Origin: Orbicella franksi
Lineage: Eukaryota
DNA: 64,000 bases
NCBI GenBank assembly: GCA_964199315.1
Contig: OZ116701.1
Location: 8,370,001-8,434,000, forward strand
Direction: 5' to 3'
In this document: piece by piece, positions 3,201-46,600 of the stretch
How positions within the stretch are numbered: position 1 is the first letter of the stretch
Layout: every line of letters starts with the position of its first letter
The notes under the pieces: generated by a model
The model's input: the letters and a program-made list of their open reading frames with translations, nothing else
Database searches by the model: none
What the model was told of the DNA's origin: nothing
Position numbers and translations under genes: made by a program

Positions 3201-6200
3201 TTCGTGTATGTGAAAATCTATTAATTATTGCAGCGGTACACATGTACAGACATAAAGATTTAATAAAATAGACCATGAAGGAGCGAGAGAGAGGCAAAGT
3301 TGGGGAGCTATGATAAGATTTAAGAGATCTCAGTCTTTGTTTAAACACGATGAAATTCCATTTAGATTTACAATGTTGAAACACTCTGACTAACTAGCTA
3401 ACGAACAAACGGTTACCACTATAATTATTATAAAATAAAATATAATAAAAGAAATGATTAAAATACAAAGAACCTGCTTTTCAAGATCCCTTGTGAATTT
3501 GATTAAAAACTGTTGCGGCAAAACTGTGTGTTCAGTTTTGTTTTGAAATCTTTAATTAAGGATGGTAAGAAAGTTCTTAATAGAAGAAACAGAAAAGAAA
3601 TACAAATAGCAATGGAAAAGAAAAAAAAGAGTGCCATGTTTGACTATGGGACAATTAGCAAAGAGTAGCGACGGTGAACATAAAACGCGGAAATTAAAGT
3701 GAGAAGTTCAACTACTGCCGCCTTGAATTAGTTGACCAAATTAAATGTAACAAATTGTTTCAGGGTTTGGACTTGTTTAACCGACTTTTGAAATTTCAGG
3801 TTGTTACTAAAATAATTGAGATGTTCACAGCCATAATTCCAGTAAACGTTCCCATGTCAAGGTCGCTCATGTCTGTAGTTTCCGAGGCAATTGAAGAAAA
3901 GGATGTAATATGTAACAGCTGCAATTCTTTGGTAAGCGAATACTTTAAGGAAAAATAAACACACAATATTTCTAGTGTATTTAGTGCGAAAGCCTTAGAA
4001 AATAACCAAGTATCGGTTACAAATAGGAGCTTGAATGGGCACACAAACAAAAAAAATAAATAAATAAAGTACAGTTAAAGATTCAAATGAAATAAGCTTG
4101 AAATTAAAATAAAGGAAAAGAAGGACCTCGTTGCTAATTGTATTTTTTCTTAGAAACTATTGTGTTTTTAAATCCTTACGTGTGTTTCATGAAATTGCGC
4201 TTGTTGTCTCTCCCTTGTTACCTTCATCTTCGTTGTGTTATCACATTTCTTTGGGCTGACTCTTCTTCATTTGTTAACACTTATTACTTCACAAGCGTTT
4301 ACAGTATCCACTCTTTGTATCGCTAGATTCCAGTAAATATTATACATGTCTCTAATTAATAACAAAAGACTGCGTTTCTAGTTGAAAACTATTTAACAAA
4401 ATTTATTCTTTCATTTTGTTTAAGAATCAGACACTACAACTGACCGAGAGAGTCTTGGCTCTTCTTGTTGCTGCACTCGCAGATTTGGAGAAGCCGTTTA
4501 GTAAAGACATGCAAGAAACGGCCGAAAGCGTCTCACGATGTCTTGTGAACATCATGGAGGCGACATCGATTGGTAGTGGTGGAGAGAACAAATCGGATGA
4601 TAGTAACTCTATTTTCAAAGTACGACAACAGTAGAGAATCTGACTTCCCAAAGACACTCTCTAGCGACTGACTGACCGACTGACTGAAAAGGTTGTAAGA
4701 ACAATACGAAAATCAATCATTCGCAACTTCAACCTAATTGAGAACAATAAGGAAACGCGAATTTGCTGTTGTCGACTATTAGCTTAGGAAAATACAAGTT
4801 TCATTGAACAATTAGCGAGTGCGAAAATTCTATTCAGCTGGTTTCGTATAGACATAGTTAATTATGGCATAGAGTAACTCGGAGTATTTATTTTTTCTCA
4901 ATCTAGGAAACCGTCCAGAAGGCAATGCAACAGTTGGATTCACTCATTCATGCTTTTTCCAAACGGCTCTTACCATACGAGAGATTAATTATGAATGCAC
5001 CTAGTTTAAAAATGATTATGCGAAGTGTCAACGTTAATGAACTTCCAGGGCTCAACATGGTGGAAAGTGGTGCACGGTTCAAATTACCAGACAATTTTGA
5101 AATGCCCGGTCTAACTGGAAACATCGTGGCAAAGGTAATTTTATTTCCTTGCCATTTAAAGCTCTTTGCTTATCTTTCCNNNNNNNNNNNNNNNNNNNNN
5201 NNNNNNNNNNNNNNNNNNNNNNNNNNNNNNNNNNNNNNNNNNNNNNNNNNNNNNNNNNNNNNNNNNNNNNNNNNNNNNNNNNNNNNNNNNNNNNNNNNNN
5301 NNNNNNNNNNNNNNNNNNNNNNNNNNNNNNNNNNNNNNNNNNNNNNNNNNNNNNNNNNNNNNNNNNNNNNNNNNNTAGAGGAATTAGGTTATTTTCGTAC
5401 TCAGTTATTTTCAAAATAAATGCAACGTTGCCACAAACGTATAAAATACGCAAAAGGATACCTTCCTTTTTTTTCTCCCGCTTCTTAGCGGTCCGGAATT
5501 CTAAATCCTTACATGCGATTGGCTAATCGCGCGCGCTCCAGCGGTCCGGATTTTCCCATCTGGACCCCGAGTATGGACCGCCCGAAATCTCCAACTTTGG
5601 AAACTTTTCAAGCTTGTTGTTACACGGTAAAACAACATAACATGTAAACATTCAATACAGAGTCAGACAATCATGGATTCTGAGCACACATTATCGCTTT
5701 TAGTGCACGAAATGTCAAACGCACGGGCGCGTACGCCAGATTTGAACTGAAGGGCGTTAACTGGATCATTTTCTTTATAGATGATGATCTTTGAAGTCAA
5801 TCCATATGCCTATGACCCCAGTAGTGAGTTAATAGAATCAAGTGTGTGTAGTTTTGAACTGAAACTTGAGGGTAAAGAGACGCTGAACGTGACTAATCTC
5901 ACTGAAGACATTGTTATCACAATTCCAATAATTTCAAACAGCTCCGACCAAAATACAAGCAGTGGTACATTTCTTCAACCCCACAAGATGACGATACGAT
6001 CGTTTTACGCGGAGAAGGTGGGAGTCCCAGTTACTCTTACAATAGAAGAACAGAGGGACACTGCTGTAATTGAAGTGTTTGTTAGATTTGGATCTAAACC
6101 ATCGCCGAGGGAATTTGATAGAAATTACACGATATTTCTCGACCCGTCATGTACAGACAGTTTAGAAAGCAAACGCAACGACGATGACTGTCAGCCTGAA

Positions 6201-9200
6201 GTATTCAACGTCACAATATTCCCAACAGAGCCAATATTGATCTACTTTGGTCTCCTGTATCTGGGAGAAGAGAACTATGTTGATCACGATAGGAGAAAGA
6301 GATCTTGTTTGAGCGGCAGCAGAGAAAAGCGTTCGTGTGTCGGTTTTAAGGATCCACCACCCAAAGGTTATAACAAAACCGTCGTTCCCCAGTATGATTC
6401 CAAGACAGATATTAATTATAACATGGCAATTAGTCAATCAAATTGCTTGTATTGGTCTGTCAATCAAGAACGATGGACCTCTGACGGATGCAAGGTAATA
6501 AAACTAGTAAAGTAAGAACACAAACCCATAGCCTTCAACGCAAATGGTCGTAGGGGTAGAGAGAGCGCAGGAGGCTAACGAAGCCAGTAATCCATGTGCT
6601 ACAACCTAAGGGATATCGTTTCCACCATTGCTGAGTAATTTGTGCTTTATGTCACTTACATGAACAATAGTTATTGATAGTATATGTATTTCTTCGGTCT
6701 AAATTTAGTTACTGAGAATTACGAAACCCTACATTACTTAAGGTAATCAACTAAGATATCAAATAATAACATATGGTATTTGAATTTGATACATGGTATT
6801 CCTATTTTTTCCTCAAATCTGCTTATAGGTAGGGCGTAGTTCAAATGGTGGCTCTCTTTATTGCCTTTGTAATCACTTAACGAAGTTTGGTGGAAGCTTA
6901 ATCCAAGCGCCTAATCCTATCGACTTCGAGAAGGTTTTTGTGGAGTTCACAAGACTTAGCGAGACTGGCAACGTGGCGGTTTTAGCTACAATAATTTGCG
7001 TATTCGTATTATATTTTGTCACAATCGTTTTCGCTAGGAGGGCAGATAACCGAGATCAAAATAGGGTAAGTACTTTGGGTTAAACATTTATACGAGATAG
7101 CACCGGTGAAACAGCCTGCATAGCTGGCAGTTCGATTTGCGTTCGATTACTTTGCCCCAGCGGCGGAGCCTCTAACGAAAGCTGCGAAACAGTGAGAAGA
7201 TTGGTGAGTTGTCATGAGATGCCAATATGTTGGGAGTCATGGTCATTAACAGTTCTGTTGGTTACCCACTAAGCAGCACCATGTCAAAGAAATGACCTTT
7301 CGTTTACTCCATGAAGTGTTTTTTTTATTTTCATGCATAGCTCTTCTAATTTCATTCTTGAGTAAGACATAACACTTCCTCTAGTTTAGTCGTACCCTTT
7401 CTCAAGCTGGAAAAATATTTCTTTTCGCTCTCATTGCAGGTGGTGCAACCAAGAGAAATAGTTATTGCGGAAGAGGGAAACTATCTTTACGAACTGGTTA
7501 TTAGCACTGGAGTTTGGCAAAGTTCAGGAACTACAGCCAATGTAACACTTTCAATAAAAGGAGAGGATGAAGAAACCGAACCATTTCTACTGAGTGGTAA
7601 TGACAGCTCAGGCGTACTGTTTGCAAGGGGAAGTATTCACGGATTTACTCTTATCGCCGACAAGCCCTTTGGGTCCCTAACAGAGCTAACTTTTACGCAT
7701 GACAACTCAGGCGAACATCCCTCCTGGTTTTTGGAAGAAGCCATAATTAAGGACGGACAGACTGAGGAAAAATGGAGATTTCCAGCGAATAGATGGCTTG
7801 CGGTCGATAAAGAAGACGGACAATTGGAAGTCTCTTTGTTGTGTGAAAATAAGGCGAATCCTGCGACTTTTGTAGATCACGTAAGGTCACTTGCCCCCCG
7901 TAAGCTCACAGATAGCCATTTATGGTTTTCCGTGATTAGTAAACGGTCTAGTAGTACTTTTACACGTGTGCAAAGAGCTTCATGTTGTATTTCGTTGCTG
8001 TTCAGTGCCATGATTGCTAATGCAATGTTCTATAACACTAGTGGAGAATCCGACGGAACTATTCATATCGGGCCATTTAAGTTTTCTTGGAGACAAATTG
8101 TCATTGGAGTACAGAGTGGTCTGATAGTTGCACCAGTTAATATTTTAATTGTGCTTCTTTTTCGCTCAAGCAAACCACGGAAAAGAAAAGAAAAATACGA
8201 ACCACATGAGGAAATTGAGCACCTTGTAGAGGAACAACGTCGTGAGACAAATTGTGTATTACCTTATTTCTTCATTTATATCGGATGGTTCTTGTGCATT
8301 GCGACAACTTTATTGGCTGCAGCATTCACTTTATTTTACAGTCTAATGTGGGGCAAAGAACTATCTGAACAGTGGCTGGCTTCCATTTTGACCTCTCTCG
8401 TTCAAGACATTTTTTTCCTACAGCCCGTAAAGGTTATGCAGGCAGTTATTGCCATTTCCTTTGCACTGATCATGAGAAAGGGAAAGAATAATACGTCTTC
8501 GAAAGAGAAGGGATCCTGTGATACATTCGACGACATCAGCATCTTACATGACGATGATCCATTGAAACTCCGCAGGCAATACGAGCTGCAGAAAATACGT
8601 GATCATAAGAGGAAAGAAAATAAATTGACTGGAATGGTGAGAGACGTTGTTCTGCATCTGTTATTTATGTTTCTCATGGCTATCGTTTGCTATGGCAACA
8701 AAAACATCCACCGATTCCTCATGACGAGTACCATGCGCCAACCATTTGGGAAATTTGATTCGGTAAGTATTTCTGATAAATCCTGGCCGTTTTTTTGTCA
8801 TAAAAGGTGAAGTCAGCAACAGCAATTAAATGTTAGAGATTACATAAAAGGAAAACTTACTTCAATTCTGACTGATTAAAACTTGGTCCGATTGTTGTTA
8901 ATTCCGTTAGTCGTGAGCAAACCTACGTCAAAATAGTTTTAAAGATCGCTCGGAAACCCTCGAAGACTCCAAAATTGACCTTATGTCATCCGATGATTTG
9001 CGATAGATTCAACTACGAATATTCGTTCAGAGGCTCGAGTAATTGCGCACATTCTGAGAATATCGATCGCCGGCTATCGCAATTAATCTATATTAGATTT
9101 CTTTGGACCCCCTGATGTGATAAGTATAGCACTGAACATCAAAATTGACTTAGAATGGCTCGTAGCGATGATTAAAAAGTCATTTAAAGGGGCAACCGGG

Positions 9201-17000: not shown

Positions 17001-20000
17001 TTGTCTAATTTTGGACAAAATGTAATCATTTTACATTATTAACATGAGTGTACCGTCTCTGGACAGTGTAAGTCATTCGCTGAGCTAGCAAACCGGCTCA
17101 AATTTCAATATCAAATACAAAGCACTTACGGTTTCAAACTTCAGATATGGTGCTTTCACGGAACTAGTCATCTGGTAGCGGTTATTATTTTTGTTACCAT
17201 AGCAAGCGATCGCCATGAGGAATATGAACAATAGGTGAAGCACGATTTCTTTCATCATCCCAATGAGCTTGACCTCCTTCTTCTTATTCTGTCGCATCTT
17301 TGACAACTCGTACCTCTTTAGCATTTTGTTTGGGTCATCGTCAATGTGTTCGTAATTGCTAGATTCAGTTTCAACTTCACTTTCTTTCCTGTTGATTTTA
17401 CCTCTTTTGAGGAACATGGACGTTAAAATGATTATCAACATGACTTTTGCTGGCTGTGCAAAGAAGACGTCTTCTGACAATGAAGTAAAAACAGAAGCGA
17501 GCCATTGTTCAGCGAGTTCTTTCCCCCACACAAGGCTGTAAAATATAGTAAAAGTGGCCCCCGTAAGGCTTGTAACGACGCACAGGAACCAACCAATGTA
17601 AATACAGAAATGAGGCAGGGCACAGCTCGACTTTCTCATTTTCTCAACTAGATGCAAAGAGTTTGCTGCTGTCTTGTAATTCTCTTCCAGTTTCTTCCTT
17701 GGTCTGCTTGAACGGAAAAGAAACACAATCAGAATGTTTACAGGGGCAACAATAAGTCCGCTTTGCACTCCCACAACAATTTGCCTCCATGAGAACTTGA
17801 ATGGTCCAACCCGTATGGCACCATCGGATTCTCCATCAGTGTTATAAAACATAGCATTGGCGATCATCGCACTGAAGAGAATTGACAGACAACACGATGC
17901 TCTTTGGACTCGAGTAAATGTACTGCTTGATGCCTTGCCAACAACAGACATCCAAATATGGCTGTCAGCAAGTTGTCGAGGGGCACGTGATCGCACTTGC
18001 TCTGAGAATCCAAATGGATTTTCTTGACCCAGGCATCCGACTGTGACTTCAATTTGACCATCCCCTTTTTCTACAGCAAGCCATCTATTCACAGGGAACC
18101 TCCACTGGTCGTCCGTTTGTTTATCCTTTATAACAACATTTTCTAAGAACCATGAAGGATTTTTCCCAGAGTTATCATGTGTTATTGTTATCTCCTTCAG
18201 TGACCCAAGTGATCCAATTGTAACGAGTTCAAACCCGTCAATACTTCCGCGTGAGAAAAAGTTACATTTTTTACCATTATTTCGCAACAACACTGTCTTG
18301 CTCTCATCGCTCTCCCCTGTAATTGTAAGGGCTACATTTGCAGTTGTACCCGAGTTCCTCCACACTCCCGAGCTGACAACTATTTCGTAGAGATAGCTTC
18401 CTTCTTCATCGACTTCTATACGTTTAGGAGGGACAATCTAATAATACAAGATTTCACTATTAGCTTTCTGGATGGAAAAATAGCTGTTCCGATGTCAAGA
18501 AGTACGGACCGATCGTAGTCTGTTCCATGCTTCTTGATCCCCCTTGTGCTAATATATCTGTTACATTCCAGCTGAATAAGAGGCCAGTTTCATTGCCTCT
18601 ATAACCACCATAGGGCGACGCATCACAGTATTTGATTATCAAAGAAATATCCTTAGTTACCTCGCCCTCCACCTCTTCTCGGTTCAAAAAAGTGATTATA
18701 TTGACTCCGTCAGCTTTACACTTTTATCCAGCTATATATGAGAAAAGTAGAAAGTTCTTGGAAACATGTTTCGCGAAGTATTGACCAAAATTAAGCTTGC
18801 TTTCAATTATTTCTTTTACGTAAATATAGCGCATGTAAGTGATTGAGCTATACCCGTTTTAAAGACACATAAAGCCGTTATTTATTTACAACAGTTCTTA
18901 GCTAATACCTTACCTTGTTCTCATCTCGCTTGTCTGCTTTTCTAGCGAAGACAACCAGAATAAAGTAAATAAGAAACACGCTTGCAACTGTCACTAGAAC
19001 GGCAATATTTCCAGTTTCACCGAGTCGTGTAAATTCCGTAAAAACTTTGTTGAAATCTATGGGGTTCGGCGCTTGTATGAAGCTTCCGCCAAATGCAGTG
19101 AGATGATTGCAAAGGCACTTCAAGTACTTTTTGTTTGAGCCGGGTCCGACCTGCATGTGGAGACGAGAAGATGATCGATTAATCTTACTGCAATCATAAG
19201 AGATGAACTTGCCAGCCATAAGCCATTTCGCTAAATGTTATGTAGACGGGAGACCCCGTCTCGGATGTTCACTCCTCAAACTCTGCTGCATTTCATAGAC
19301 CTAGTTTCTTTGTAGAATTGTCTCCGAAGGTGACTCAACATTATCTTTGTTTCAATTGTAAACGATGACCAATGATCATTGCACGATATAGAGTATAATT
19401 CATTGTTTCTCTGTCCATTATACATGTATTTTATGAGATGGCATAAACTTCGTTTGCACTTATTTTATTATTTTATTATTATTATTATTATTATCATTGT
19501 TATTTTCCTTTTTTGTCGATATGTTATAAGATTTAGTCGTTGTTGTTGTTGTAATGCAAACGCATTTTGTTGTACAGGGTTTCTTTGCAGACTATCCACT
19601 CGATTTGCCTCGTGCACTCATTAGTTTATCAAGTACTGATTTACCATATCTGTGTATGAACTTATGATAAGCAAACGTACACTGCTTAATTAGAGAACTG
19701 AAATGGAGAATCTCTCTGAACATGTATTTTTAGCAATATTTTGAAACAGGTAGTTCTCAATCGTAAATTTAAAGACTTAGTATATTTAATCAATGCTGTT
19801 ATGCTACCTTGCATCCATCGGATGTCCATTTCTCCTTTGTCTGAGACCAGTACAGACAACTTGCTTGCATTATTGACATGGTATACTTGACATCCGTTGA
19901 TGAATCGTATTGTGGTATAACTGTCTTGTTATAGCCATTCGGTGGTGGTTCCTTTGTACCTATGCAAGAACGCCTTTCTCTTCCATGTCCAAAACAGGAT

Positions 20001-23000
20001 CTCCTTTTTCTTGAATGTTCGGTGGCATTCTTTTCTCCGAGGAACAGCATTCCCACGTAGATTACAGTAGACTCCGATGGCACCACTGTGAATGAAATCT
20101 GTTCAACAGCACAGTCAGTGACGTTGTAGTCGCCCACTGATAAGCCGTTTTGACAAGTCGCAGTGAACGCAACTGTGAAGTTTTGATCAAAATCCTCTAC
20201 GGTTGGTCTCGATCCAAATTTTATAAACACCTCCACTATCGCGTCTTTATCAACTCCCTCAAGGCTTAAAGACACAGGAACATTACCAAGCTCGGCGTAA
20301 TAGTTACTTATTGTCATCTCGTATGGCTTAAGAAAATAGTTCTCCTGATCAGCCGATTCTGATTCCTCGTTGTTGGTGGGTATTGTTATCTCTATGTCAT
20401 TTTCGAGGTCCGACACGTTCATTGTTCCTGTTTCGTCGTTTTTTAGTTCCAGGCTGCAAACGCTTGATGTAACGGAAAGGCTGCTATTGTCCCAGCTATA
20501 TGGGTTTATTGTAAGGGTCATCATCTGTAAAGTAATAAATATTTAAATTATAACCAAAAAAAATGAAAGTCGGGACGAATTTCCTTCGCTTTTCTGTCTC
20601 CTTACACAAATTGCTTCAGAATAGCATTTAGCTATGTTTAGTTACATTTTTCTCGAGGCAGAAAATAGAGAAAATTTTTTAAGAAAGTGAAAGCGAAGAA
20701 CAAATCTTCTTTCCTGTCAGTTAGTCGCGGAACCAACGCAGATGGGAACCGTTTGCTCTGGAAACTGCTATTCCTATCATCTTATATATTTCGTGTGCTC
20801 ATCTTGATTCGGAGTTTGACTGCTATAGCATTTGCTACTTCAGAAGTACACTGTTGTTTAAATACTTTCAAGTGTTAGTAGCTTATTTTCCTAGACGTTT
20901 GCATTGTGCTTCCATTAAATACGAACCTATTCTACGCGTCGATGCCACAGCTTTTAAGAAAAATAGTGATGATTGCCGGGATCATTTAGCTGTAGATGTC
21001 TCAGGTCAATTTTGTTATTACCTTTGCAGTTATATCTCCCACAGCATTGAGATTAGTATTAGCTGGCATTTTAAACTGGGCAGAGCCTTCTCCAACAACC
21101 AGTTCGTTTAAATCACTGGAGGTGACTTTACTCAGAGTAATTGACAAATCTTCCATCTCTATAACTTGGTTTTCAGAGCTAACTAAGCGTGTGGAGATCG
21201 AATCCATGATAACGTCGATCTGCCCCAAGGCCTTCTCTGTATTGACCTAATTGTAAAAATGATAATCAAATCAATACAATGTTCATAGAAAATGAAAACT
21301 GAAACTGTAATCAGTTGCTGAAGATGCTGCAAGCTTTGAGCTGATTAGAACATGGATCAATTTACGTAAACGTTTAACTGTCGTTCCCAAAACACCATCA
21401 GTAATTGCCACGATGTTGCATTGAAGCTACACCATTACCCTTTTAAGCATGCAAAATGGAAGCTTGCTGTGAAAGTTATTTTAAAATTGTGCCAGAATTT
21501 GGGCGCCATTGCCACCCACTCTTCTGGAAACCAGATATAAGAGGGCTTAAGGTGGCTCAAAACAGTCCCCAAAATGTTCATTATTATGTGTCATTGTAAC
21601 CACTTTATATCGGTTCACGACACAGTCATGGTATCGAAAAACTTACCTACTTACCAAGTGAACATGTTGGTTTCGATTTCGTGGCACAATAGGTTACCAT
21701 AGCAACAGTATGACCTGCTAAAAATACCCTTAATTTTAGCATTTTGCGCTTATAATTAAAAAACCCAGCATGATGAACCTACTTTTTTTTTATCGAATTT
21801 TGATAAGAATAAAAGAATGCAACTTTTTAAAAAGTTTAAAAGAATTATGTAGAGAAGGTTCAGAGCCACCTTAAATTAAATTATAAGATATGGAAACATA
21901 CTGACCCATTAAGTTGATATACACAGCTTATGTAGTTATGATATCACAACTTCTTAAATTGCGTCATAGCTGCAATGATCAATCATGTCTTCCTATCTTT
22001 CTCCGAAGTTCAAATATATTTATGATCTTTCACATATTCACTTGTGTAACAATACGCGTAGCAGGTGGAAGAAAAAAAGAAAGGAAGAAAGGACAGTTCA
22101 CTGGTCTAACAAAGAGCAAACCTTAGATTCCGAGGAATTCTCGTTCTCCTCACTGCCAGATGCTGATATGAGGACATTTTTCAGACATTCAGTAGCAGTT
22201 CCAGCCACTTCTTCGATTTCAATAGAGAAAGACTCTTCCGGATCTGCAAGTGCAGACCCTAACAGAGCTACCATGTTGGCAGTAAAGCTAAGCGTGTACT
22301 CCTAGGAAAAAAAACAATGCAATCTGTCACTACATATACATAACTCTACTGGCGTCCGTTATAACTTAAATAAAGCCCGAGGTAGCAAGGATATTCCGGA
22401 TGACCAATAATTGTCCTACTGCTAGACAATAGAAGGTTCTAAGACAAAATACACTAAGTCTACCTTTTGTTTTATAAAACATTTTGCTTATAACTGTTGT
22501 TTCAGTCAAAAGAAGGGAAATGGGAGTCAATAAATCTCGGTGCACCCGCCGCTTGGTTGAGCTGGATTCGCATTGAATTATATTGAGGATGTTCGCGTTA
22601 ATTATTTTTGCGCATCCTTACTGCGGACGCAAATTCATACGCCACTTCATGCATCCAGCGCGCGCTAAGTAATAAAATGAACAATGATAGAGCAGATGGC
22701 CATTGCTATGGCTTTGCCAGGATTTAACGATCTTATTTTTGCGCCGTTCCGCGAAAAAATTAAGAAAATCTATCGATTAGAAATTTGAATTTTTTTGCAA
22801 AATGCACCATGCACCTTTCAGCTCTTTGTTTATCTGTGTGGCGGTTTCAAATGCCTCTTGAAGGGTTAAGTTTTGTGAAAACATTGGCAACATTTGGAAT
22901 TATTAACGCAACGGATTCACTTACACAAAATAGCACTAGGATAGTTTGTCTGCGTTGATTCATTTTTGATATTTTAAGCCAAAAACCCTGAAGACCATGC

Positions 23001-30951: not shown

Positions 30952-33900
30952 AAGTGATTGGTCGGTCGGTCGGTTGGTTGGTTGGTTGGTTGATTGATTG
31001 ATTGACTGATACCGCTGACAGGTAATTATGACTGATAGAAAAGGATAACAAAAAAAAAATTTTTTTAAATAAATAAAAGCCTTCTTACCGGTGCATGATA
31101 GTCTGCCCTTACTATTGTATCCTGGAGCACAAGCGCAAATAAAAGAGCCGTCGGTATTAGTGCAAGTTTCCGACACGTGGCAGTCATGAGAATCCGTCGT
31201 GCATTCGTCGATATCTGTGTAGAAAGTGAAATGTAAGTGGTATTCAAAATAAAATAATATCGTGAAATAACCGTATTTTGTTTAAAATTACATTTGGAAT
31301 GTTTGTATAAACAGCTTGTCAAATGTTTACAGAGTTTTCAGTACGTGGTGCTCACATTTGAATGAGAACGGTTGAGGGAAGTGACAGTTTTAAGCGAAAT
31401 TTTTTTTTTTATTTATTCATTTATTTATTTATTTTTTAGGAGGAGGAGCTGGGAGTGGGGAGGGAAAGGTAACACTCCTTAACTTCTTCTCTTAACACTT
31501 TCTCTCGGCTTGTTCAGTGTAAACCCTTGATTTTGTTCAAGTACCAGGTTAATATTTGGGTGGGTGGTGGTTATTTTCTTTTTTTCTTTTTTTTTTTTAG
31601 GGAAGTAGTTGTGAGGCATACTTCACTAATTGGAATTGAGCAAAAGGTGGATAACACAATGAAGCCAAATAGATAGTCGCCATGTTGTCTGAATTATTAT
31701 TAGTAAAATAAATACAGTGTATATATCGAGTCACGCACCACTGCATACTTTGCCATTGCCAGTATACCCCAAATTACAAGCACAAGTAAAAGAGCCGACA
31801 GTATTATAGCAGGTCGCTGATACATGACAATCGTCAGAACTTGTCGTGCATTCGTTTATATCTGCCGGAGATAACAACATGTCAATTAAAGGAAGATGTG
31901 TTGAGCCATCCATACATTATAAAGCTTGTCCGAGTTATCTTAAGAGGGTGTGACGTGATCAAAGTGGTTTATCAAACCGCAACCCCCTCCGTTAGAGGGT
32001 GCAGGAATCTCTCCTCCTACGCGGTCATGTGAGGTTATACTTTACGGTTTCGTTTGATGCTTTTGCAATTAAACACTTCAGGGTGACTGTACTGGACCTT
32101 ACGTATTGAGATCAGCACAGTTGAGCATATTCGTGCACGGTCGTGGTCAAATAAATAGTGAGGGTAGAAAGTAATACCGTCTAGCCGTCATGAAAACATA
32201 GAACGATTTTCAGCTAAGTGCCGTAAAACCAAAACCTATTAAGTAATCACTCACTCTGGCAAATCACAAAGTGGTACAGACAATCTAGTGAACCAATAAA
32301 AATTGGACTTGCAAATACATGTTGATGATGCGAAACACGGGAAACGTGTGTGAGCGAGTAACGATTGGTTTTGGTCTTACTTCTGATTTCCAAGATTTCT
32401 AAGCCAATCGCTTAACGTAGTGATGCAAAACCCACACATACACGATTTAAATTCGACACTCAATCAAAAAACCGCTCTATTGGCCGTCTTGATCGCTTTA
32501 ATGCTCCACACATAGCACATGAAGAGTCTTTTGGCAACATAAGTGACAGCTTTATCGCGGCCATCTTCATTTCGAGTAGTGGGGGAATTGGAAAATTCGA
32601 AATGCTTTACTTAATTTAAGACGAATGATGCTATCTAGCTAAACCAAAAGCTTAAAATCAGATAAATATGGCTTCTTATTATTACAGATTTATCTGTTGT
32701 TACAGCTTCTGTTCTTTTACTTGACGCCATCAAGTTAAAGTTGTGGCCATAGTTCGCTCATTAATTCATCAGTATTTAAAACAGGAAAGTTTTTGATATT
32801 CATAAACAAATTAAGTTGCACTGAGTGAATACTATATTTAGCAAAAGTTTTAGGTATGGTAAAAGTCTGTATAGTGCCAAGTGGTCCATCAGGCTGGAGC
32901 TTATCCCGGTTTCTGTAGCATTAATCGACGAAGGGTATTTCTACTTCCCCCTGGATGGGATGCTAGTCTATCGCAGGGTTACTCTCAGTATCAAGCTCGT
33001 CGATACCCATTTATACACCTGGGCGGAGAGAGGCACTGTGAGAGTGTCTTGCCCAAGAATACAACGCCATGTGCCCGGCCAGGTCGAATCCGGACAGCTC
33101 GATCCAGAGACGAGCGCACTAAACATAAGGCTACCGCGCCTACCAAAAGGTTTAGGGTAAGATGTAGTTGTCGAAAGTGAAAATATAATAGTTGTTAAGA
33201 AAATAATCAGGAGGAGTAAAGCTCTGTACCATTGCATGTTGACTTGCCGTCCCCAGCGTACCCTGAGTTACAAGCACAAGTAAAAGATTCTTCAGTGTCT
33301 GTGCAAGTTGCCAGCGCATGGCAGTCGTGAGAATCCTCAGCGCATTCGTCGACATCTGTGTAAAAATGAAATCATAAAAGCTTACTCAAAATTAAACACC
33401 TTATCAAAGTAACCTTATTCTGTTTTAAAGTAAGGTAGCATTAAGTAATCTTTCTATATTAACGTGGTCAAAATACACTTAGCTTGATACAAATCAAATA
33501 TTGATGTTATTGCAATGAAAGTATTTACAATTTGTCCAAAATTCTATTTTTTTTTTCAAAACAGCCGCCATTTTTGAACCGCCATCTTGGATTTCACTTA
33601 ATTATACATGACGTAAGATAACCAAAACTATACAAAAGCAGCAAAGAAAGATAAAACTAATATTACAGAAAGCAAATTAAATTTCTTCGGGAAATTCAAA
33701 ATTTGCACAACATGCTTGTCAAAAATACGGTTGTGATAGGGACAACCACATGCCATACAAAACTGATCCCGGAAATTTTAGGCAAAATCACCAGACTGGA
33801 GTTCAAGCATAAAGAGGATTTTATCTCCCACGAAAACATCGGGCAACCCCCAGTTTGACAGCAGTGCTAAAATGCGTACTTACTACTAATTTCGCCTGTG

Positions 33901-34304
33901 CCACAGTATCTCAAATCACAAACAGGTGGCGGTACCAACTTATAAATGTAGAAGTCTCCGCAATTTAGAACCTCGATTGTGTTGCTCCAGTGGCAACAAT
34001 CACTAACCCAGTGGTAGCACACTTTCCTCGTTACAATGCCGTCGGAGACGGTGGGATGGGGATCGCTTAACCATCCAGTGGCATCCGTGTTACAGCGGTT
34101 CACGGCAGGGCACGTCCCTGGCATACTGGTCCCAGCGGCACCAGTGAAGCGGTACCATCGGTTCTCAATGGATGAGTCACATAAATTGTTTATGTCGCCG
34201 TGATTAATATGCCTGTCGGCATCGCTTAGCGGAGTGTACGACACACATTCTAAGGGAATCCCTTGACAATATCTTCCTGCAGCTAAAAATAGGGCAAGTG
34301 ACAT
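14008..34304 (-). CDS. Gene B: polycystin-1-like protein with D8C + 9 EGF-Ca ectodomain (about 2499 aa if ATG 34304 is the start)
   Basis: Exons 5'->3' on the minus strand: 34304(or acceptor near 34282)-33884 (D8C); EGF exons 33355-33230, 31861-31739, 31214-31089, 29814-29692, 28679-28554, 28017-27895, 27306-27184, 26929-26807, 26449-26318; then 25535-24830, 24707-24134, 24036-23827, 23320-23183, 22301-22122, 21246-21022, 20524-19808, 19150-18914, 18437-17130, 16712-16544, 15497-14008. Total 7500 nt, divisible by 3, all junctions GT-AG. GPS is [11 protein letters not shown]. The start codon is uncertain. Confidence 0.92.
15641..15947. mobile_element. Degenerate copy of the TTAA/GGTGGCT MITE family (Kolobok-like)
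   Basis: Starts TTAA|GGTGGCTG and ends TTCAGAGCCGCC. The 3' part aligns by eye to 21820-21870. The right TTAA is lost. Confidence 0.45.
21551..21870. mobile_element. Kolobok-like MITE with TTAA target-site duplication
   Basis: TTAA|GGTGGCTC...GAGCCACC|TTAA: 8-bp perfect TIR, RR terminus and TTAA on both sides (21547-21550 and 21871-21874). 320 bp, no ORF. Confidence 0.7.
26318..33355 (-). CDS. Gene B array of nine single-exon calcium-binding EGF repeats
   Basis: Each exon is 123, 126 or 132 nt, phase 1-1, with consensus D-[IVL]-[DN]-E-C...C-x-[ND]-x-x-G-S-[FY]-x-C-x-C..G[YF].G.G..C. Confidence 0.92.
30875..31010. repeat. Compound tetranucleotide microsatellite (TGAC)n/(TGAT)n/(TCGG)n/(TTGG)n
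   Basis: Direct reading; it generates the spurious [11 protein letters not shown] 30850-31176. Confidence 0.95.
32198..32480. mobile_element. MITE with about 29-bp imperfect TIRs
   Basis: Left end ATAGAACGATTTTCAGCTAAGTGCCGTAA; reverse complement of the right end ATAGAGCGGTTTTTTGATTGAGTGTCGAA. Confidence 0.55.
32851..33143 (-). mobile_element. tRNA-derived SINE (CORE-like central domain)
   Basis: On the minus strand: A-box-like GGTAGCCTTATGTTTAG, B-box-like GGATTCGACC, then TTCTTGGGCAAGACACTCTCACAGTGCCTCTCTCCGCCCAGGTGTATAAATGGGTA. Two related copies lie at about 45975 and 49138/51464. Confidence 0.75.
33884..34304 (-). CDS. Gene B D8C (uromodulin/GP2/OIT3-type Cys-rich) domain exon
   Basis: CD...[10 protein letters not shown]...C....C.T...GW...HP....G.V.R.VC.HW...CC.....I.V.NCG.FY.YKL......LRYC matches the UMOD/GP2/OIT3 D8C pattern. 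Confidence 0.9.
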
Positions 34305-40191: not shown

Positions 40192-42125
40192 GTTTGTTTG
40201 TGTATTTTTGATACTGACGATTCCCATACTAGTCACAATGTTAAAAGGTAACATGGTGATAACTCAAGCCGCTGACAGTAAGTCGCCTAGCACGAATGTG
40301 TTGCATGTTCTACCAAGACAAAAAGAAATCTGCATTTATAGTCCTCTAACACCGTTTTGCAATAATTGTATTAAAAAAAATGCTGAGAGCTGGACGTGTT
40401 ATTGGAAAATATTCCAGTCTCTATTTTAATCGACGGTTTTCTCTGAATTTCTAACATAATTGCTTTTAATTAATTCTGAGTGTGAGACCGTCAGTGAAAC
40501 TTGAGTCAAGCCGATTGAACGAGCATATAGAGAAACTACCTAGAAAATATGCGTGATGAATCAGTATATATATCTGGGTCTATGATAGTGAGATGCTGGG
40601 TTATAAATCAAGATGTCTTTACGTATCAAAGAAATTGAATCCAAAATAAATCGAACAATATAGACCAATAAATCAAGCGATATCAATCAGGGCTCGAGGA
40701 ACGACTGTGACATTAATAATTGATATCTGTTATAGAGTGAATACCTCTCCCTACAAAACGGATATGCTTATAAGAAAGCTTTTCGGCATTCCATTTAAAT
40801 GTTTCTAATTAGTCATTATTTTATTCACAAAATCCAGTTGGGTGCACGTTGTCGTTGAGTTTGTCTGGCTGATTCGTCTCTAATTTAAATGGTTTCCGAA
40901 GAAATTCCTCAGTAGAATTTACTCTTGCCTAGTAGTTGGAATACACGGAAGTAACACTGACCTTTTTCAACTGGGCTTTGGTGAGCGTTAATTAATCTAT
41001 CGCTGCTATAAATAAATGACATAAGTTCCAGCAGTAATGTTGAACCTCACAGGCACGCCCCACCTCACGTTTGCGGTTCATTCATCATGAGCTTAAATAA
41101 ATGCCAAAGGCGTTAAAGGACAGTGTGCCGCTTGATTATGACAAATTTGCTTTCCTGATTCCAAAATATATTGCCAGGTGGCATCAAATATACAAATAAA
41201 TTGGTTACAAGGATTCTACTCAACGGAACAGAACAAAGTTACTGAGGAAGACCGGCAGAATTATAAGGATTGAAAGGGATTGCCTCATAGTTAGTAGAGA
41301 GGACTGGAGTCCCGTCTACTAACCTAGTATGGGCACATATCATAAATGACCTTGTGGTCATTTTTCTATTATTTTTTGAGTTGATATACCTTTCCTTTAT
41401 ACACTTTGACTTTTCATTTTTTGTTTGTTTGTTTTTTTTTGACATACATATATGTCAAAGAAAAAAAAATAGGGCAAGTTTACGGCAAGCTCTTGGCTCC
41501 TGTTAAACACAATTTATTCACCAAGGATGCTGTCTCGCTATAAATAAAAAATAAAAGTAAATGAACGAAAAAAATATATAAATTGGCTTTGCGGACATAA
41601 GGTTCTCGTGCTTTAATGTTAAAGAACGTTAACAGAGGATTTTCACTGTCACGCAACATAAAATTAAATCGAAAGCAAGTCTCTTGATCGAAAGCCCTTC
41701 TATGATTATAGACCCGCCGGATTGCAAGAGTGTAGCCCAATATGGCGGCCGGAAAATTATGCTAGCATCTGAAACTTACTTTAGTTATCTAGGCGACTGA
41801 TCGACTAGCGAACAAACAAACATTTACACAAAACGTTTCCTGATACATTAACTTCTGAAATGGGTTAAAATCAAGAGATAAGCATACATTTAACTTTTTT
41901 TCGACCGGCGCAATCGTAGCTTTATGTTACGCATGGTTATAGCTCTGAAATTCTAAATTCGTTGGTTTCCAAACGAAGAACGCTATTGAGCTGAAATATT
42001 GTAAACAGATATAACTTTATCAAAGCTTTCGTCTTCTGAACACAGAAATTTTGGTGGCTCTTAAGTTTTGGATTTCAGAATTTGACGAGGTCACGTGAAA
42101 ACGCCCCATGTATTTTTTTATGCAG

Positions 42126-43665
42126 CTGAAGACGTTTGCAGCTCGTACACGACATTTGATTCTGCCGGCAGAAATGTAACTTTTCCCTACCAAACCCTTT
42201 GTGACGATATTCTTACTACTGAGTGGTACCGACTTACTGGGGATGCCGGATCATACTTACCGGAAAGTTGCCCGCAGCCTCAAAGCCAGGTATGTGGAAC
42301 CACCTATCCTGGCTGGTTAAATGGAATCCACCCCACAACGGCTGAGGGTGTGGTGACAAGGACAGCGTGCTTCAGCTCCAGTGCAGGGTGTTGTACTTAT
42401 TCCACGTCAATTGAAGTCAAAAACTGTGGAAACTTCTATGTTTATAAGTTGGTGCCAGTGACCGCGTGTTATTCGAGGTACTGCGTCACAAACTTGGGTG
42501 AGTATGTTTCTAATTTATTATTTTTTTTAATGCATTGCAGCCATTGTTTCCAAAACGATGACTTGACACTATCAAAATCAGTTCTCGCATGCTGATACAT
42601 ACCAGCTCCTTAATTTATCATTTCTTGTCTTATTTATTCTTTACGGATCGAATTATATATCAACCGCCGGTTTACAAGGGCTTTAGGTGGGGGAGGAGAG
42701 GGTGGTCGTATGTCCATCTCCCCCAGAGGATTTACTCTGTAATGCTGAAATTTTAAATTGCTGTTCATCAGTCATTCGCAGAAAATTTTGATCTGCTAAT
42801 AGTCTCTTGTAATTTGACATGCAGATCAAGCCAAATTTCTTTTTCACATACTTTGATAAGTTGATAGAATTCCTCTTTTTTTTTCAATGTTCCTAGCCAG
42901 CTATAAAGACATGATTGATCATCGTGGTTATACACACATGACTTGTATGTATAAATCATGTCTTCTTATCTCTCTCCGTAGTTCAAATACTAATGTGATC
43001 TTTCATACATTCACTTGTATTTTCCTAACCAGCATTGAACAACTAGTATTTTAACGTTCTCCTTATTAATTCCCCTCATTCATTGCGTCCCAAACGTAGC
43101 AATGTGCTTCTGCCTAAGCGGCAGTGGTCGCTAGTGCTGTGCCTATGCTTTGTCTCCTTCTCTCCTCAATACAGAGGTGTCCATACACTGGCCTATGCAG
43201 GCATCCTTAGCCAATGTTATTTAAAGAGATCTATCAGTTTCATATAAAACGTTTCAATGATATTTTTTTTTTCCACAGTCCCAGGTATACCAGCGGAATG
43301 CACATCGTCAGGGTACAACGAACTTGATGAAGCCAACAGATATTGGAAATATGACGATGGTAATGTTCATTGCGATTCTGATAACATTACCGACAACCAG
43401 TGGTACCGTTTCACGGGAGAGGCTGGGACAATGATGGCAACCCATTGCATTCCACAGTCAACTTGCAACGCCGAGATGACTGGCTGGATCAATGGTGATC
43501 ATCCCAACACCGCCTACGAGACGGTGACGAGATCTGCGTGTATGCACTGGAGTTCAAGTTGTTGTTATGTGTCATATTCGGTTGACATACGCAACTGCAG
43601 CGGGTTCTACGTTTATAAATTACAGAAACCAACTAGCTGTAGTCAACGTTACTGTGGTGTCAAAG
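42126..43665 (+). CDS. Gene C tandem D8C domain exons (two)
   Basis: WYRLTGDAG...GWLNGIHP...CC...[12 protein letters not shown]...RYC and WYRFTGEAG...GWINGDHP...CC...[12 protein letters not shown]...RYC; both exons are phase 1-1. Confidence 0.9.
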
Positions 43666-46600
43666 GTAATTTTGTCATCAGATACCCTACTTTGCTTTAC
43701 TGTGGAACTTTGCTTCATTACGCATCTTTCTTAGCTATATCTTTTTGCAATGCTTTCATCATGGTAATATCGATATTATATTGAGTCGTCGAGGCTGATT
43801 TCCCATTCATATACCGTCACTGTCGCCATCATAAGTAAGCAAGCCTTTTGTCATGGTCGATGCCATTTCTAAGCTCTAAAGTCGGCCTGAACTAGGTCGA
43901 AACTGTATTGTGATTTGTAATACAAGGTCGTGTCAAGAGAACGATTGCGCAAAGGAAACGTTATCCGTCAGTTTCATTCGGCGCCAAAACTTGTGATAGA
44001 TCTGACAGAAAAATATATTTTGTTATATCGTGTAGTAATGTAATTGTTTGTTTGTTTGTTTTTTGCTTGTGTTTTTCTTATATGTTTAGTATTCGCTTAT
44101 CTTTTCGAAATCTAATGAAGCAAAACTGTTTCCATGTGCAGATGAAAATGACGCATGTTCAGCCAGCGATGGTTCAGCGGAATGCACATGTTCAGCAGGC
44201 TATTCAGGCATTCCATGCAAAGGTTAGTGTTAATACTTAATCATGAGTTCAGGATTATGGATCTGCGTAAATTACTCCTCTATCACATAGAAGGGGTAAT
44301 GACAGACATTTAAACGCTGAGCATTCAATCGCCAAAACATAAAAGTGCAATGCAGGATGCACTTAACCCTTTGCTCACCTGGGACTTCCTTTGAAATTTT
44401 TAACTTACGATTTGCCTTTACGATCTTGCAATGGAATCTTGTTTGCGCAAAGATACCTTTTCGAATCTTTATCGTCATCGAAATCGTTGCTGGTGACGAT
44501 TTTGAATTTCATAAACACTTATGTGTTTTCGGTGGCACTTTACCTATAGTTCATTCTGTATGCCGTCTTCTCTCGTTTCGATACTGCCTCAATTATGCGA
44601 TAAGATTTCCTACACAACAGTTCCGCTGAACGTTTCTCCTACTTTATATATTCGTTATTTCTTAGAGGTATCCTTCAGCTAACTCGGAAGCTGTCTAAAT
44701 TACATTTGCGTGCTCATAAATTATAGTTGCAGCTTCACTCACTAAAGTCGCAGTTGCAATTGCTGACTTCAATTTTTACTATCATGTTTTAGGCTCGTGA
44801 TATGTTACTGCTTTTATCTGCAGATACTGACGAATGCACAACCAATGCTCACAACTGTCATTCATCGGCGACTTGCAGTAACACCATTGGTTCTTTCAAT
44901 TGCGCTTGCAACAAGGGATACACCGGCGACGGCATTTCTTGTAGTGGTGAGCAGTTTCTTGTTAACGTTATAGCTCAAGAAAACAAACTTCGTGGAAGCT
45001 TTGTTTTGTTTTGATTTTTGTTTTGTTTTTGTTTTTGTTGTTGTTGTTGTTGTTGTTGTTTTGTAGTTATTTACTGTTTTTAAAGAAATAGAAAACATTT
45101 TCCGAGTTTCTATAGAGTTTGAGTATAAGCTTACTAGCATTCTATGCCGTTCTCTCATTGGCTACGTTACTCACCATCTATTCTTTTGTGGATGACGTCA
45201 AAATGTAGTGAGAACAAAAAAAGTGGCGCACAAGTCGTAGGCGAGTGTGTCACTGGTGTTCTTACCACATTTTGACGTGTTCTAAGATATGTTACTGAGC
45301 AGACGCAAGGCAACATGAAATCTACATGTATCTGTGTTAAAAAATAAAGAAACCAAAATGTTAATGATGTTCTCTTTACTTTGGTCCTCCAATATATCAT
45401 GAGTAAGAGCAATCAAAATGCGAGAATAATCTAACTTGTTATCTAATTTATTATAGACGTTGATGAATGCACGACCCACGCTCACAACTGTCACTCAGAT
45501 GCGACCTGTACCAACACAGAAGGCGCGTTCACTTGCAGTTGCAAAGATGGGCACACTGGAAATGGTCGACAATGTGTAGGTATGTGTTTCCACGTACATC
45601 CTCATAGACTAGTTTAGAAGAAAAGCTTCGCTAACTTAAAAACCTAATATATAACTCATGAAGCAGTCTGGCAGTTAGATGGCTGTGCTAAGCAATACAT
45701 TCTGGAATATTTGTGACTTCATATTATATCATAACGTAACTTTTTATTTGTTATATTTTAATATCTTCCTTTTTGGTAGATGTCGACGAATGCAGACCTA
45801 ATGGAACTCACAACTGTGATATGAACTCCGAATGCGTGAATACCATTGGTTCATTCAACTGTACATGTCATCAAGGATATTCAGGAGACGGCTTTACATG
45901 TCATGGTATGGTTATTCAACGAAGAAACAAATATGTTTGAACTATTTGATATTTACCGCATACTATTATTGTCTGGGAAACGCGTTGGTGAGATGGTTAG
46001 CGACCTAGAGTCCAAATTGAGCGGCCAGGGTTGGATCCCTGGACAAGATCACTGCGTTGTGTTCTTTGAAAAGTGCTACAGTGCCTCTCCCCACCCAAGT
46101 GTATAAATGAGTACCAGTGAATTTTGATGCTGAGGAACGTAACCCTACGATAAGCAAGAGTTCCTTCAAAGAGGGATAGAAATATTACGTGTTGCAAAAT
46201 AAAAAAAAATGCGACAAAGCATATTTCACCAGGTACAGTTGCCATGCCAACATTACTTTATTTGATCAATCACATCATACCAAAATATTTCCAAATACAT
46301 TTAGGAAAAGTGGCCAAATTCGGACATTATTAAGTTGGTGGGGCCCTCAAAAGCCTCTCCCTCACCCGAACCCTCCCTCGGAGAATGAATAGTATTAAGA
46401 CCTCTAATCATTGCCATTCTACTAAAGCTGGATCTGTCACACTGAGAAAATGGAATAAGGTACTACAGTGTTTAATGGAGTACGGGGTAAGAAGTGAGAG
46501 CCATACACATTAGCCGTCATGGCAATCTCAAAAGAGGTCTTACGTCAAATTTTGAGAGCTAAGTTCAGTCTTTGTTATTTTCATTGTCGTAGTTATTGTT

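Follow-up and report, generated by a model that had tools for sequence, protein, structure and literature searches.

The GAIN domain is the activation module shared by adhesion G-protein-coupled receptors (GPCRs) and polycystin-1, and whether its stalk is exposed by force, by flexibility or by proteolysis is debated. The preference of furin and the other PCSK convertases for R-x-[K/R]-R is established. Integrin alpha chains and the disulfide loops of nicked AB toxins are cut by convertases, their products staying tethered by disulfides; Met is an example of a maturation nick beside integrin alpha chains and fibrocystin. A convertase cut is documented in fibrocystin/PKHD1 (PMC6992733), and furin cleaves the ectodomains of adhesion GPCRs, including the SEA-domain site of Gpr126/ADGRG6 and BAI2 (PMC6954182, PMC12038025, PMC4736325). 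In alpha-ENaC, two furin sites, 175-RSRR-178 and 201-RRAR-204, flank a short tract whose removal activates the channel (PMC13488063). Here we describe a stretch of 64,000 nucleotides (nt) of Orbicella franksi DNA (contig OZ116701.1, positions 8,370,001 to 8,434,000; this whole stretch is called the window below) in which three polycystin-1-like genes, A, B and C, each encode a twin basic motif inside the GAIN region. We propose that the motif probably marks places where a convertase acts, within a lineage-specific GAIN loop that is predicted to be exposed, with at least one of the two bonds being cut. Full-text literature searches combining polycystin or GAIN with furin or convertase returned no convertase site inside a polycystin GAIN domain and no description of the loop.

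Twin basic motifs in three polycystin-1-like genes

An earlier inspection of the letters of the window (the original prediction) had placed a twin motif in each of the three genes, and translation reproduced these positions exactly. Gene A carries RRKR-SCLSGS-REKR-SC (RRKRSCLSGSREKRSC) at 6291-6338 on the plus strand, with site 1 reading RRKR|S and site 2 REKR|S. The 16-residue motif of gene B is found at 19964-20011 on the minus strand, and that of gene C, at 55824-55871 on the plus strand, is identical to it in all 16 residues. Both sites match the furin consensus R-x-[K/R]-R exactly in all three genes, and [VI]-G-x-K-[DE]-P-P-P stands directly C-terminal of the motif in each. The distance to the GPS, first given as about 55-60 residues, held only approximately: in the Oculina model P0192, which is collinear, the first GPS cysteine comes 51 residues after the start of the motif, and the HL/T bond lies 71 residues after site 2 and 81 residues after site 1.

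The motif had also been described as an internal repeat of R-x-[KR]-R-S-C that is held while its surroundings diverge, and the comparison of genes B and C bears this out. Their motif DNA differs at 12 of 48 nt, and all 12 differences are synonymous (0 non-synonymous), which argues for purifying selection and not for gene conversion. In the flanking 150 nt, 66 and 50 positions differ when the sequences are compared without gaps, counts that a length difference upstream may inflate.

Conservation within the genome and across species

A six-frame search of the 497-Mb genome yielded at least 61 matches to the motif-bearing GAIN exon, many of them in tandem arrays on contigs C4 and C5. In all 30 of the first-fetched paralogs, the loop retains a furin-type site, and 27 have full R-x-[KR]-R at both positions, with one site weakened or lost in each of L008, L012 and L015. 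Over the exon, most of these 30 are about 33% identical to gene C, within an overall range of 32-78%. Of 20 further paralogs that were fetched, 16 keep at least one site, bringing the number of paralogs with a dibasic site in the loop to at least 46 in total.

Examples of the arrays are those at C4:8.20-8.89 Mb, C4:17.56-17.65 Mb, C4:29.73-30.85 Mb, C5:1.79-2.59 Mb and C5:12.67-13.06 Mb, and the three genes of the window belong to the first of them (C4:8.2-8.9 Mb). The expansion of PKD1-like genes in this genome is very large, and several of the exon matches contain in-frame stops and are possible pseudogenes. One divergent class is represented by L050 (C11:12246505-12249062) and by the cluster of P0082 (20 members), and has a much longer single exon with a 493-amino acid (aa) open reading frame. 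In this class, a low-complexity insert very rich in acidic and basic residues (including WWWWWW) is followed by a single G-R-K-R-R-S site and then by C-I-L-V-K-E-K-D-P-P-P.

To follow the motif beyond this genome, we searched 1.8 billion representative proteins with HMMER and obtained 217 matches, most of which carry the motif. A MAFFT alignment of 146 sequences comprised 123 with a long loop and 23 with a short loop. At least one R-x-[KR]-R is present in 117 of the 123 long-loop relatives, and at least two are present in 84; the short loops of the 23 other aligned relatives all lack it. When the loops were shuffled with their composition preserved, 14.7 ± 3.4 loops (maximum 25) contained at least one site and 1.1 contained at least two. 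Measured by density, there are 217 occurrences of R-x-[KR]-R in 6,628 loop residues versus 4 in the 23,132 residues that lie elsewhere in the exon, a difference of about 190-fold. These sequences are related, and the site counts describe conservation rather than independent trials. As a sequence pattern, the twin motif is more than chance.

In the 103 strict twins, R at P4, K or R at P2 and R at P1 are fixed by the definition of a strict twin. P3 is free: site 1 has K, R, V, E, T or Q there, and site 2 has Q, E, K or V. P1' is a small residue, with S, D, G or A making up about 90%. Such a profile is the one that would be expected if furin-type recognition were under selection. The first cysteine lies four residues from site 2 in 81 of the 103 twins, with an overall range of 3-10, and the sequence of the spacer is variable (FGHG, LSGS, FGN, GGQGG, SENG, GPHH).

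A second class has one R-x-[KR]-R-S without an adjacent cysteine, then 7-14 variable residues, and then a single Cys-[VI]-x-[VF]-K-[DP]-P-P; its members, from this genome and elsewhere, include L033, L044, L050, P0046, P0059, P0209 and P0213. Inserts of one or two residues between the serine and the cysteine also occur, as in RQKR-SEI-C and RRRR-SA-C. Because the site floats 7-14 residues upstream and such Ser-Cys inserts are tolerated, the basic motif appears to be selected independently of the cysteine. Many relatives have a single site and a single cysteine, and the claim that the twin is conserved thus survives in a narrower form: what stays constant is the presence of one or more convertase sites upstream of Cys-[VI]-x-[VF]-K-D-P-P, and the twin itself is only the commonest form. 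In two PKD1L2 proteins of Stylophora pistillata (P0203 and P0205), we observed a collapsed twin, R-[VI]-R-R-C-[ST]-K-[RQ]-S-C-V-Q-Y-K-E, with four residues between the two cysteines and a degenerate second site.

Taxonomically, the twin was found in named full-length proteins of Scleractinia (Stylophora, Montipora, Oculina, Acropora and Desmophyllum), in Actiniaria (Nematostella, Actinia and Actinostola) and in the octocoral Dendronephthya, and its carriers include PKD1-type proteins of about 3,000 residues that contain PKD repeats. The original prediction had named poor conservation in orthologs of other species as a finding that would speak against it; this spread across Scleractinia, Actiniaria and an octocoral is the opposite. 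The loop is absent from all six deuterostome relatives retrieved (two from Branchiostoma and one each from Saccoglossus, Ptychodera, Glandiceps and Antedon). In these six proteins, the flanking strands are joined by a link of fewer than 30 residues, often fewer than about 15, without a basic motif. A word-indexed search with a Nematostella PKD1-type protein gave named matches that were all anthozoan, plus one Logan sequence. Since it is present in hexacorals and an octocoral and missing in six deuterostomes, the loop insertion would be at least as old as Anthozoa.

Predicted structure of the loop

To place the motif in a structural context, we modelled two GAIN regions with AlphaFold from family alignments, Stylophora P0172:300-710 and Oculina P0192:1229-1642. 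These are models of homologs and not of the window proteins, being 39% (Stylophora) and 74% (Oculina) identical to the gene C exon; Oculina P0192 carries the identical 16-residue twin motif. The mean predicted local distance difference test (pLDDT) was 82.9 for the P0172 model and 86.1 for the P0192 model. The P0172 model, the only one searched, matched CD97 and BAI2 (Z 16.2), BAI3 (15.6), latrophilin-1 (15.1) and CELSR1 (15.0), with the best non-GAIN chain at Z 7.9 and a Foldseek probability of 1.00 for the GAIN match. The modelled region is, by its predicted fold of a helical subdomain A and a beta-sandwich subdomain B, a GAIN domain.

In both models, the motif lies in a stretch of 49-56 residues without secondary structure, with a block-mean pLDDT of 55-65 over the motif. 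This coil runs between the confident strand G-x-Y-Y-x-G-I that precedes the GPS motif and the long strand with the first GPS cysteine, and over the K-D-P-P...P-x-Y-D tail pLDDT climbs, one model reaching 86-89 and the other 77-93. Taken with the alignments, the models indicate that a loop of about 45-55 residues is inserted into GAIN subdomain B of anthozoan polycystin-1-like proteins. The site is N-terminal to the first transmembrane helix (TM1), and hence in the ectodomain. It had been proposed that a model of the GAIN region could reveal whether the motif forms a surface loop; both models predict an exposed, disordered coil and not a buried segment.

Predicted processing and alternative explanations

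The Orbicella franksi genome encodes predicted furin-like convertases. Exons matching the convertase P domain (PF01483) number at least 15, each scoring above the Pfam cut-off, and one open reading frame is furin-like in combining a P domain and a Cys-rich region with a transmembrane helix and a tail; the catalytic domain of the convertase is divided between exons. During Golgi passage, a furin-like convertase would nick either or both of the R-x-[K/R]-R|S bonds in the loop, with cuts predicted after residues 1526 (site 1) and 1536 (site 2) in Oculina numbering and a 10-residue piece between them. With the HL|T self-cut, the GAIN domain would become a multi-piece assembly made up of a large N-terminal fragment, a piece of about 71 residues (S-C-V-x-V-K-D-P-P...C-x-C-x-H-L) that holds the GPS strands, and the stalk with the membrane part. 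The 10-residue spacer would probably stay attached through its cysteine. Three cuts, with either the excision of this peptide or a loop tethered by the two cysteines, had already been suggested in the original prediction. More speculatively, the nick could lower the stability of the GAIN sandwich, making release of the ectodomain or exposure of the stalk as a tethered agonist easier.

The spacer sequence varies among the relatives, which speaks against a conserved peptide with a bioactive or inhibitory role. An excised peptide of the neuropeptide kind was considered separately and rejected, both because the spacer is not conserved and because no terminal glycine is left for amidation after the basic residues are removed. 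The ectodomain of an Acropora REJ/PKD1 protein is present in the coral skeleton proteome (PMC4890752). This find suggests that such ectodomains are released, though it is circumstantial and the GPS cut alone could explain it; the skeleton-proteome peptides are tryptic and cannot reveal cuts after Arg. We also considered a bolder scheme, which we offer tentatively and regard as rather unlikely. The GAIN domain would be built for three cuts, and the convertase would sever the strand link ahead of the GPS strands and free a "GPS mini-fragment" of about 71 residues clamped between ectodomain and stalk. The nick would then be a protease-set, force-independent switch for activation or shedding of the polycystin channel complex, and REJ/PKD1 ectodomains might reach the skeleton matrix in this way.

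Several observations weigh against convertase processing of the loop. The literature search returned no proteomic or biochemical record of cleavage at the loop sites in any species. Low pLDDT is only a proxy for exposure, and if the two loop cysteines form a local ring, site 2 falls inside a ring of 11 residues, which may restrict access of the protease. The Ser-Cys that follows the basic motif equals the basic residues in its conservation, which exceeds what furin requires and may reflect a structural or binding role. Nor need a nick in a beta-sandwich loop have any functional consequence. Two metatranscriptome runs over 54500-58500 gave short contigs from exon and intron alike, with no splice joints, and two raw-read polyA runs over the same interval gave zero reads from about 12% of each run. 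Because the contigs span intron and exon without splice joints, the libraries would seem to contain unspliced RNA or DNA carry-over.

The alternative that survives best is that the loop is not cut at all and is a structural or ligand-binding element, perhaps a polybasic loop stapled by a disulfide, whose acidic binding partner could be sulfated glycans, acidic matrix proteins or another domain, so that the match to furin is incidental. In its favor, S follows the cut at 161 of 217 sites and the next residue is C at 164 of 217, about as conserved as the Arg residues; the four-residue spacing from cysteine to site 2 in 81 of the 103 twins suggests a defined small ring, and the segment after the second cysteine (K-D-P-P...P-x-Y-D) is modelled with rising confidence. 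A patch of charge, however, would tolerate K at P1 and P4 and a shuffled order of residues, and shuffled loops give about 8-fold fewer sites. P3 is also free while P4, P2 and P1 are fixed, single-Cys relatives keep the site at a variable distance from the cysteine, the spacer sequence is not conserved, and the motif is modelled as disordered. We consider an uncut loop unlikely, if still a credible account of the motif.

A second alternative concerns the cysteines. Across the 146 aligned sequences, the four non-GPS cysteines were scored for presence and absence, and the patterns were CCCCCC in 95, CC-CCC in 14, ----CC in 13, -C-CCC in 8, ---CCC in 7 and CC--CC in 6. Of the pieces predicted in Oculina, that of 71 residues contains five cysteines and that of 10 residues a single one. 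With the usual pairing of the four GPS cysteines, a partner is needed for the fifth cysteine of the 71-residue piece, which could be the cysteine of the spacer (a local ring, with the peptide tethered) or an upstream cysteine (a cross-link, with all pieces covalently joined). The patterns of presence and absence would fit local and cross pairing about equally well.

Under cross pairing, the loop would be cleaved, but its cysteines would be linked to the two upstream cysteines of the same exon, and the cut would be a maturation nick without shedding or peptide release. The second loop cysteine and the second upstream cysteine are each at least 90% conserved, the first of each pair less so, and eight sequences keep just the second upstream and second loop cysteines (-C-CCC). 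The second loop cysteine is present without the first in 29 sequences, so that it must have another partner or be free. Six relatives, however, have the upstream pair and no loop cysteine (CC--CC), which implies an upstream pair bonded to itself; several of the -C-CCC sequences really have three upstream cysteines that are misaligned; and the upstream hairpin is more confident than the loop, in the first model only. On balance, we find a cross-linked nick quite improbable.

That the shared motif has no function, and was left by recent duplication or gene conversion between the tandem copies or by a chance match of low-complexity sequence, is effectively refuted: the three genes are tandem paralogs in a larger local array and the peptides of B and C are identical, yet the 12 differences in the 48 nt of B/C motif DNA are all synonymous, and the motif is kept across hexacorals, an octocoral and divergent subfamilies at about 30% identity.

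Gene organization and other features of the window

The window holds three predicted tandem genes of the REJ-GAIN/GPS-PLAT-PKD-channel architecture, of the PKD1L or receptor-for-egg-jelly type. Gene A extends from the left window edge to about 11.3 kb on the plus strand, gene B from about 34.3 to 14.0 kb on the minus strand, and gene C from about 42.1 to 61.1 kb on the plus strand. Exon junctions were placed by GT/AG sites and by collinearity with the Oculina patagonica NCBI models named "polycystin-1-like protein 2" or "receptor for egg jelly-like," in which the motif exon is joined directly to the GPS exon. Gene C is 75-87% identical to the Oculina models over the GAIN, GPS and PLAT exons.

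In all three genes, the motif exon is about 240 codons long and ends with C-L-Y-W-S-x5-W-T-S-D-G-C-K at a GT donor, and the next exon, after AG, encodes C-L-C-N-H-L-T-[K/A/S]-F-G-G and then a hydrophobic helix. The gene A exon at 5763-6494 (plus strand) covers most of GAIN subdomain B up to the second GPS cysteine and ends in DGCK, with the GT donor at 6495; its GPS exon at 6829-7068 (plus strand) encodes CLCNHLTKFGG at 6862-6888, the stalk and the start of TM1. The corresponding exons of gene B, both on the minus strand, are at 19808-20527 (GAIN subdomain B with the loop) and 18911-19153 (GPS motif at 19091-19117). Gene C has its GAIN subdomain B exon with the loop at 55305-56027 (GT donor at 56028) and its GPS exon at 56589-56828 (GPS motif at 56622-56648), both on the plus strand.

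The conserved Cys/Trp pattern of the GPS and the H-L-T triad are intact in A, B and C. The Pfam GPS model scored above its cut-off for gene C only (24.7 bits; cut-off 22.5) and was sub-threshold for the gene A and B exons. Pfam matches on the gene A exons were REJ (4e-33 and 6e-32), PLAT (6e-17), Polycystin_dom (4e-20) and PKD_channel (4e-29). Downstream exons of gene C at 57102-61085 (plus strand) were assigned to PLAT, the transmembrane region, the polycystin domain and the PKD channel by analogy with the scanned gene A exons, and given this exon context gene C is a complete PKD1L-type gene. Hydrophobic stretches are visible in the exon translations of all three genes. That these are GAIN/GPS-containing PKD1-like proteins, as originally suggested, is supported by the Pfam domains, the GPS motif and the fold of the homolog models.

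At their N-terminal ends, genes C and B have exons for repeated uromodulin-like D8C domains (PF23283), at 42095-42595 and 43257-43784 on the plus strand for gene C (E value ~1e-14 for both exons as scanned) and at 33882-34265 on the minus strand for gene B. Arrays of EGF-like exons of about 40 residues follow at 44.8-46.9 kb (plus strand) and 26.3-33.4 kb (minus strand), and the gene architecture is D8C-EGF-REJ-GAIN-PLAT-channel. A run of N (assembly gap or masked sequence) at 5180-5375 interrupts an exon-like open reading frame of gene A that is part of GAIN subdomain A. Within a gene C intron, a 257-aa open reading frame at 50114-50887 (minus strand) had no Pfam match; overlapping open reading frames on both strands surround it, and the region may be a repeat or the remnant of a mobile element. 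PolyA metatranscriptome contigs at 55082-55295 and 56329-56478 cover intron sequence of gene C.

Discussion

If convertase processing of the GAIN loop is real, one more processing step would have to be annotated for a very large family of anthozoan genes, whose exon copies in this genome number at least 61. Well over a hundred GAIN domains with conserved convertase sites before the GPS strands would amount to a natural experiment on stalk exposure. The loop may also bear on the shedding of polycystin/REJ ectodomains into the coral skeletal matrix and on the polycystins of cnidarian mechanosensory hair cells. Even if it is uncut, its strict conservation marks an unexplained functional loop.

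The closest described systems are the autoproteolytic GAIN/GPS proteins, namely polycystin-1, sea-urchin REJ3 and the adhesion GPCRs, with which the coral proteins share the fold, the C-x-C-x-H-L-T motif and the REJ-GPS-PLAT-channel architecture. In those systems, and likewise here, the fragments of the GPS cut are expected to stay associated through the beta-sandwich. The known GAIN cut, however, is autocatalytic at HL|T, whereas the coral genes add one or two predicted enzyme-dependent sites 71 and 81 residues upstream. Gpr126 and BAI2 likewise have a convertase site in the ectodomain of a GAIN receptor besides the GPS cut, but their sites are single, lie in other domains or further N-terminal, and have no adjacent cysteine, whereas the coral sites are in GAIN subdomain B.

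Alpha-ENaC, although of an unrelated family, likewise has two furin sites flanking a short tract in the ectodomain of a channel. Its tract is a sequence-specific inhibitor of 26 residues; the coral spacer has 10 residues, is unconserved and is probably disulfide-tethered. A conserved excised tract of the ENaC kind was not found in the coral proteins, where the spacer varies in both sequence and length. Finally, fibrocystin, the integrins and the AB toxins likewise have a dibasic site beside or inside a Cys-bridged loop, so that the chains can stay linked after the cut, and the putative coral ring, with nine residues between its cysteines, would be smaller than the loops of the AB toxins.

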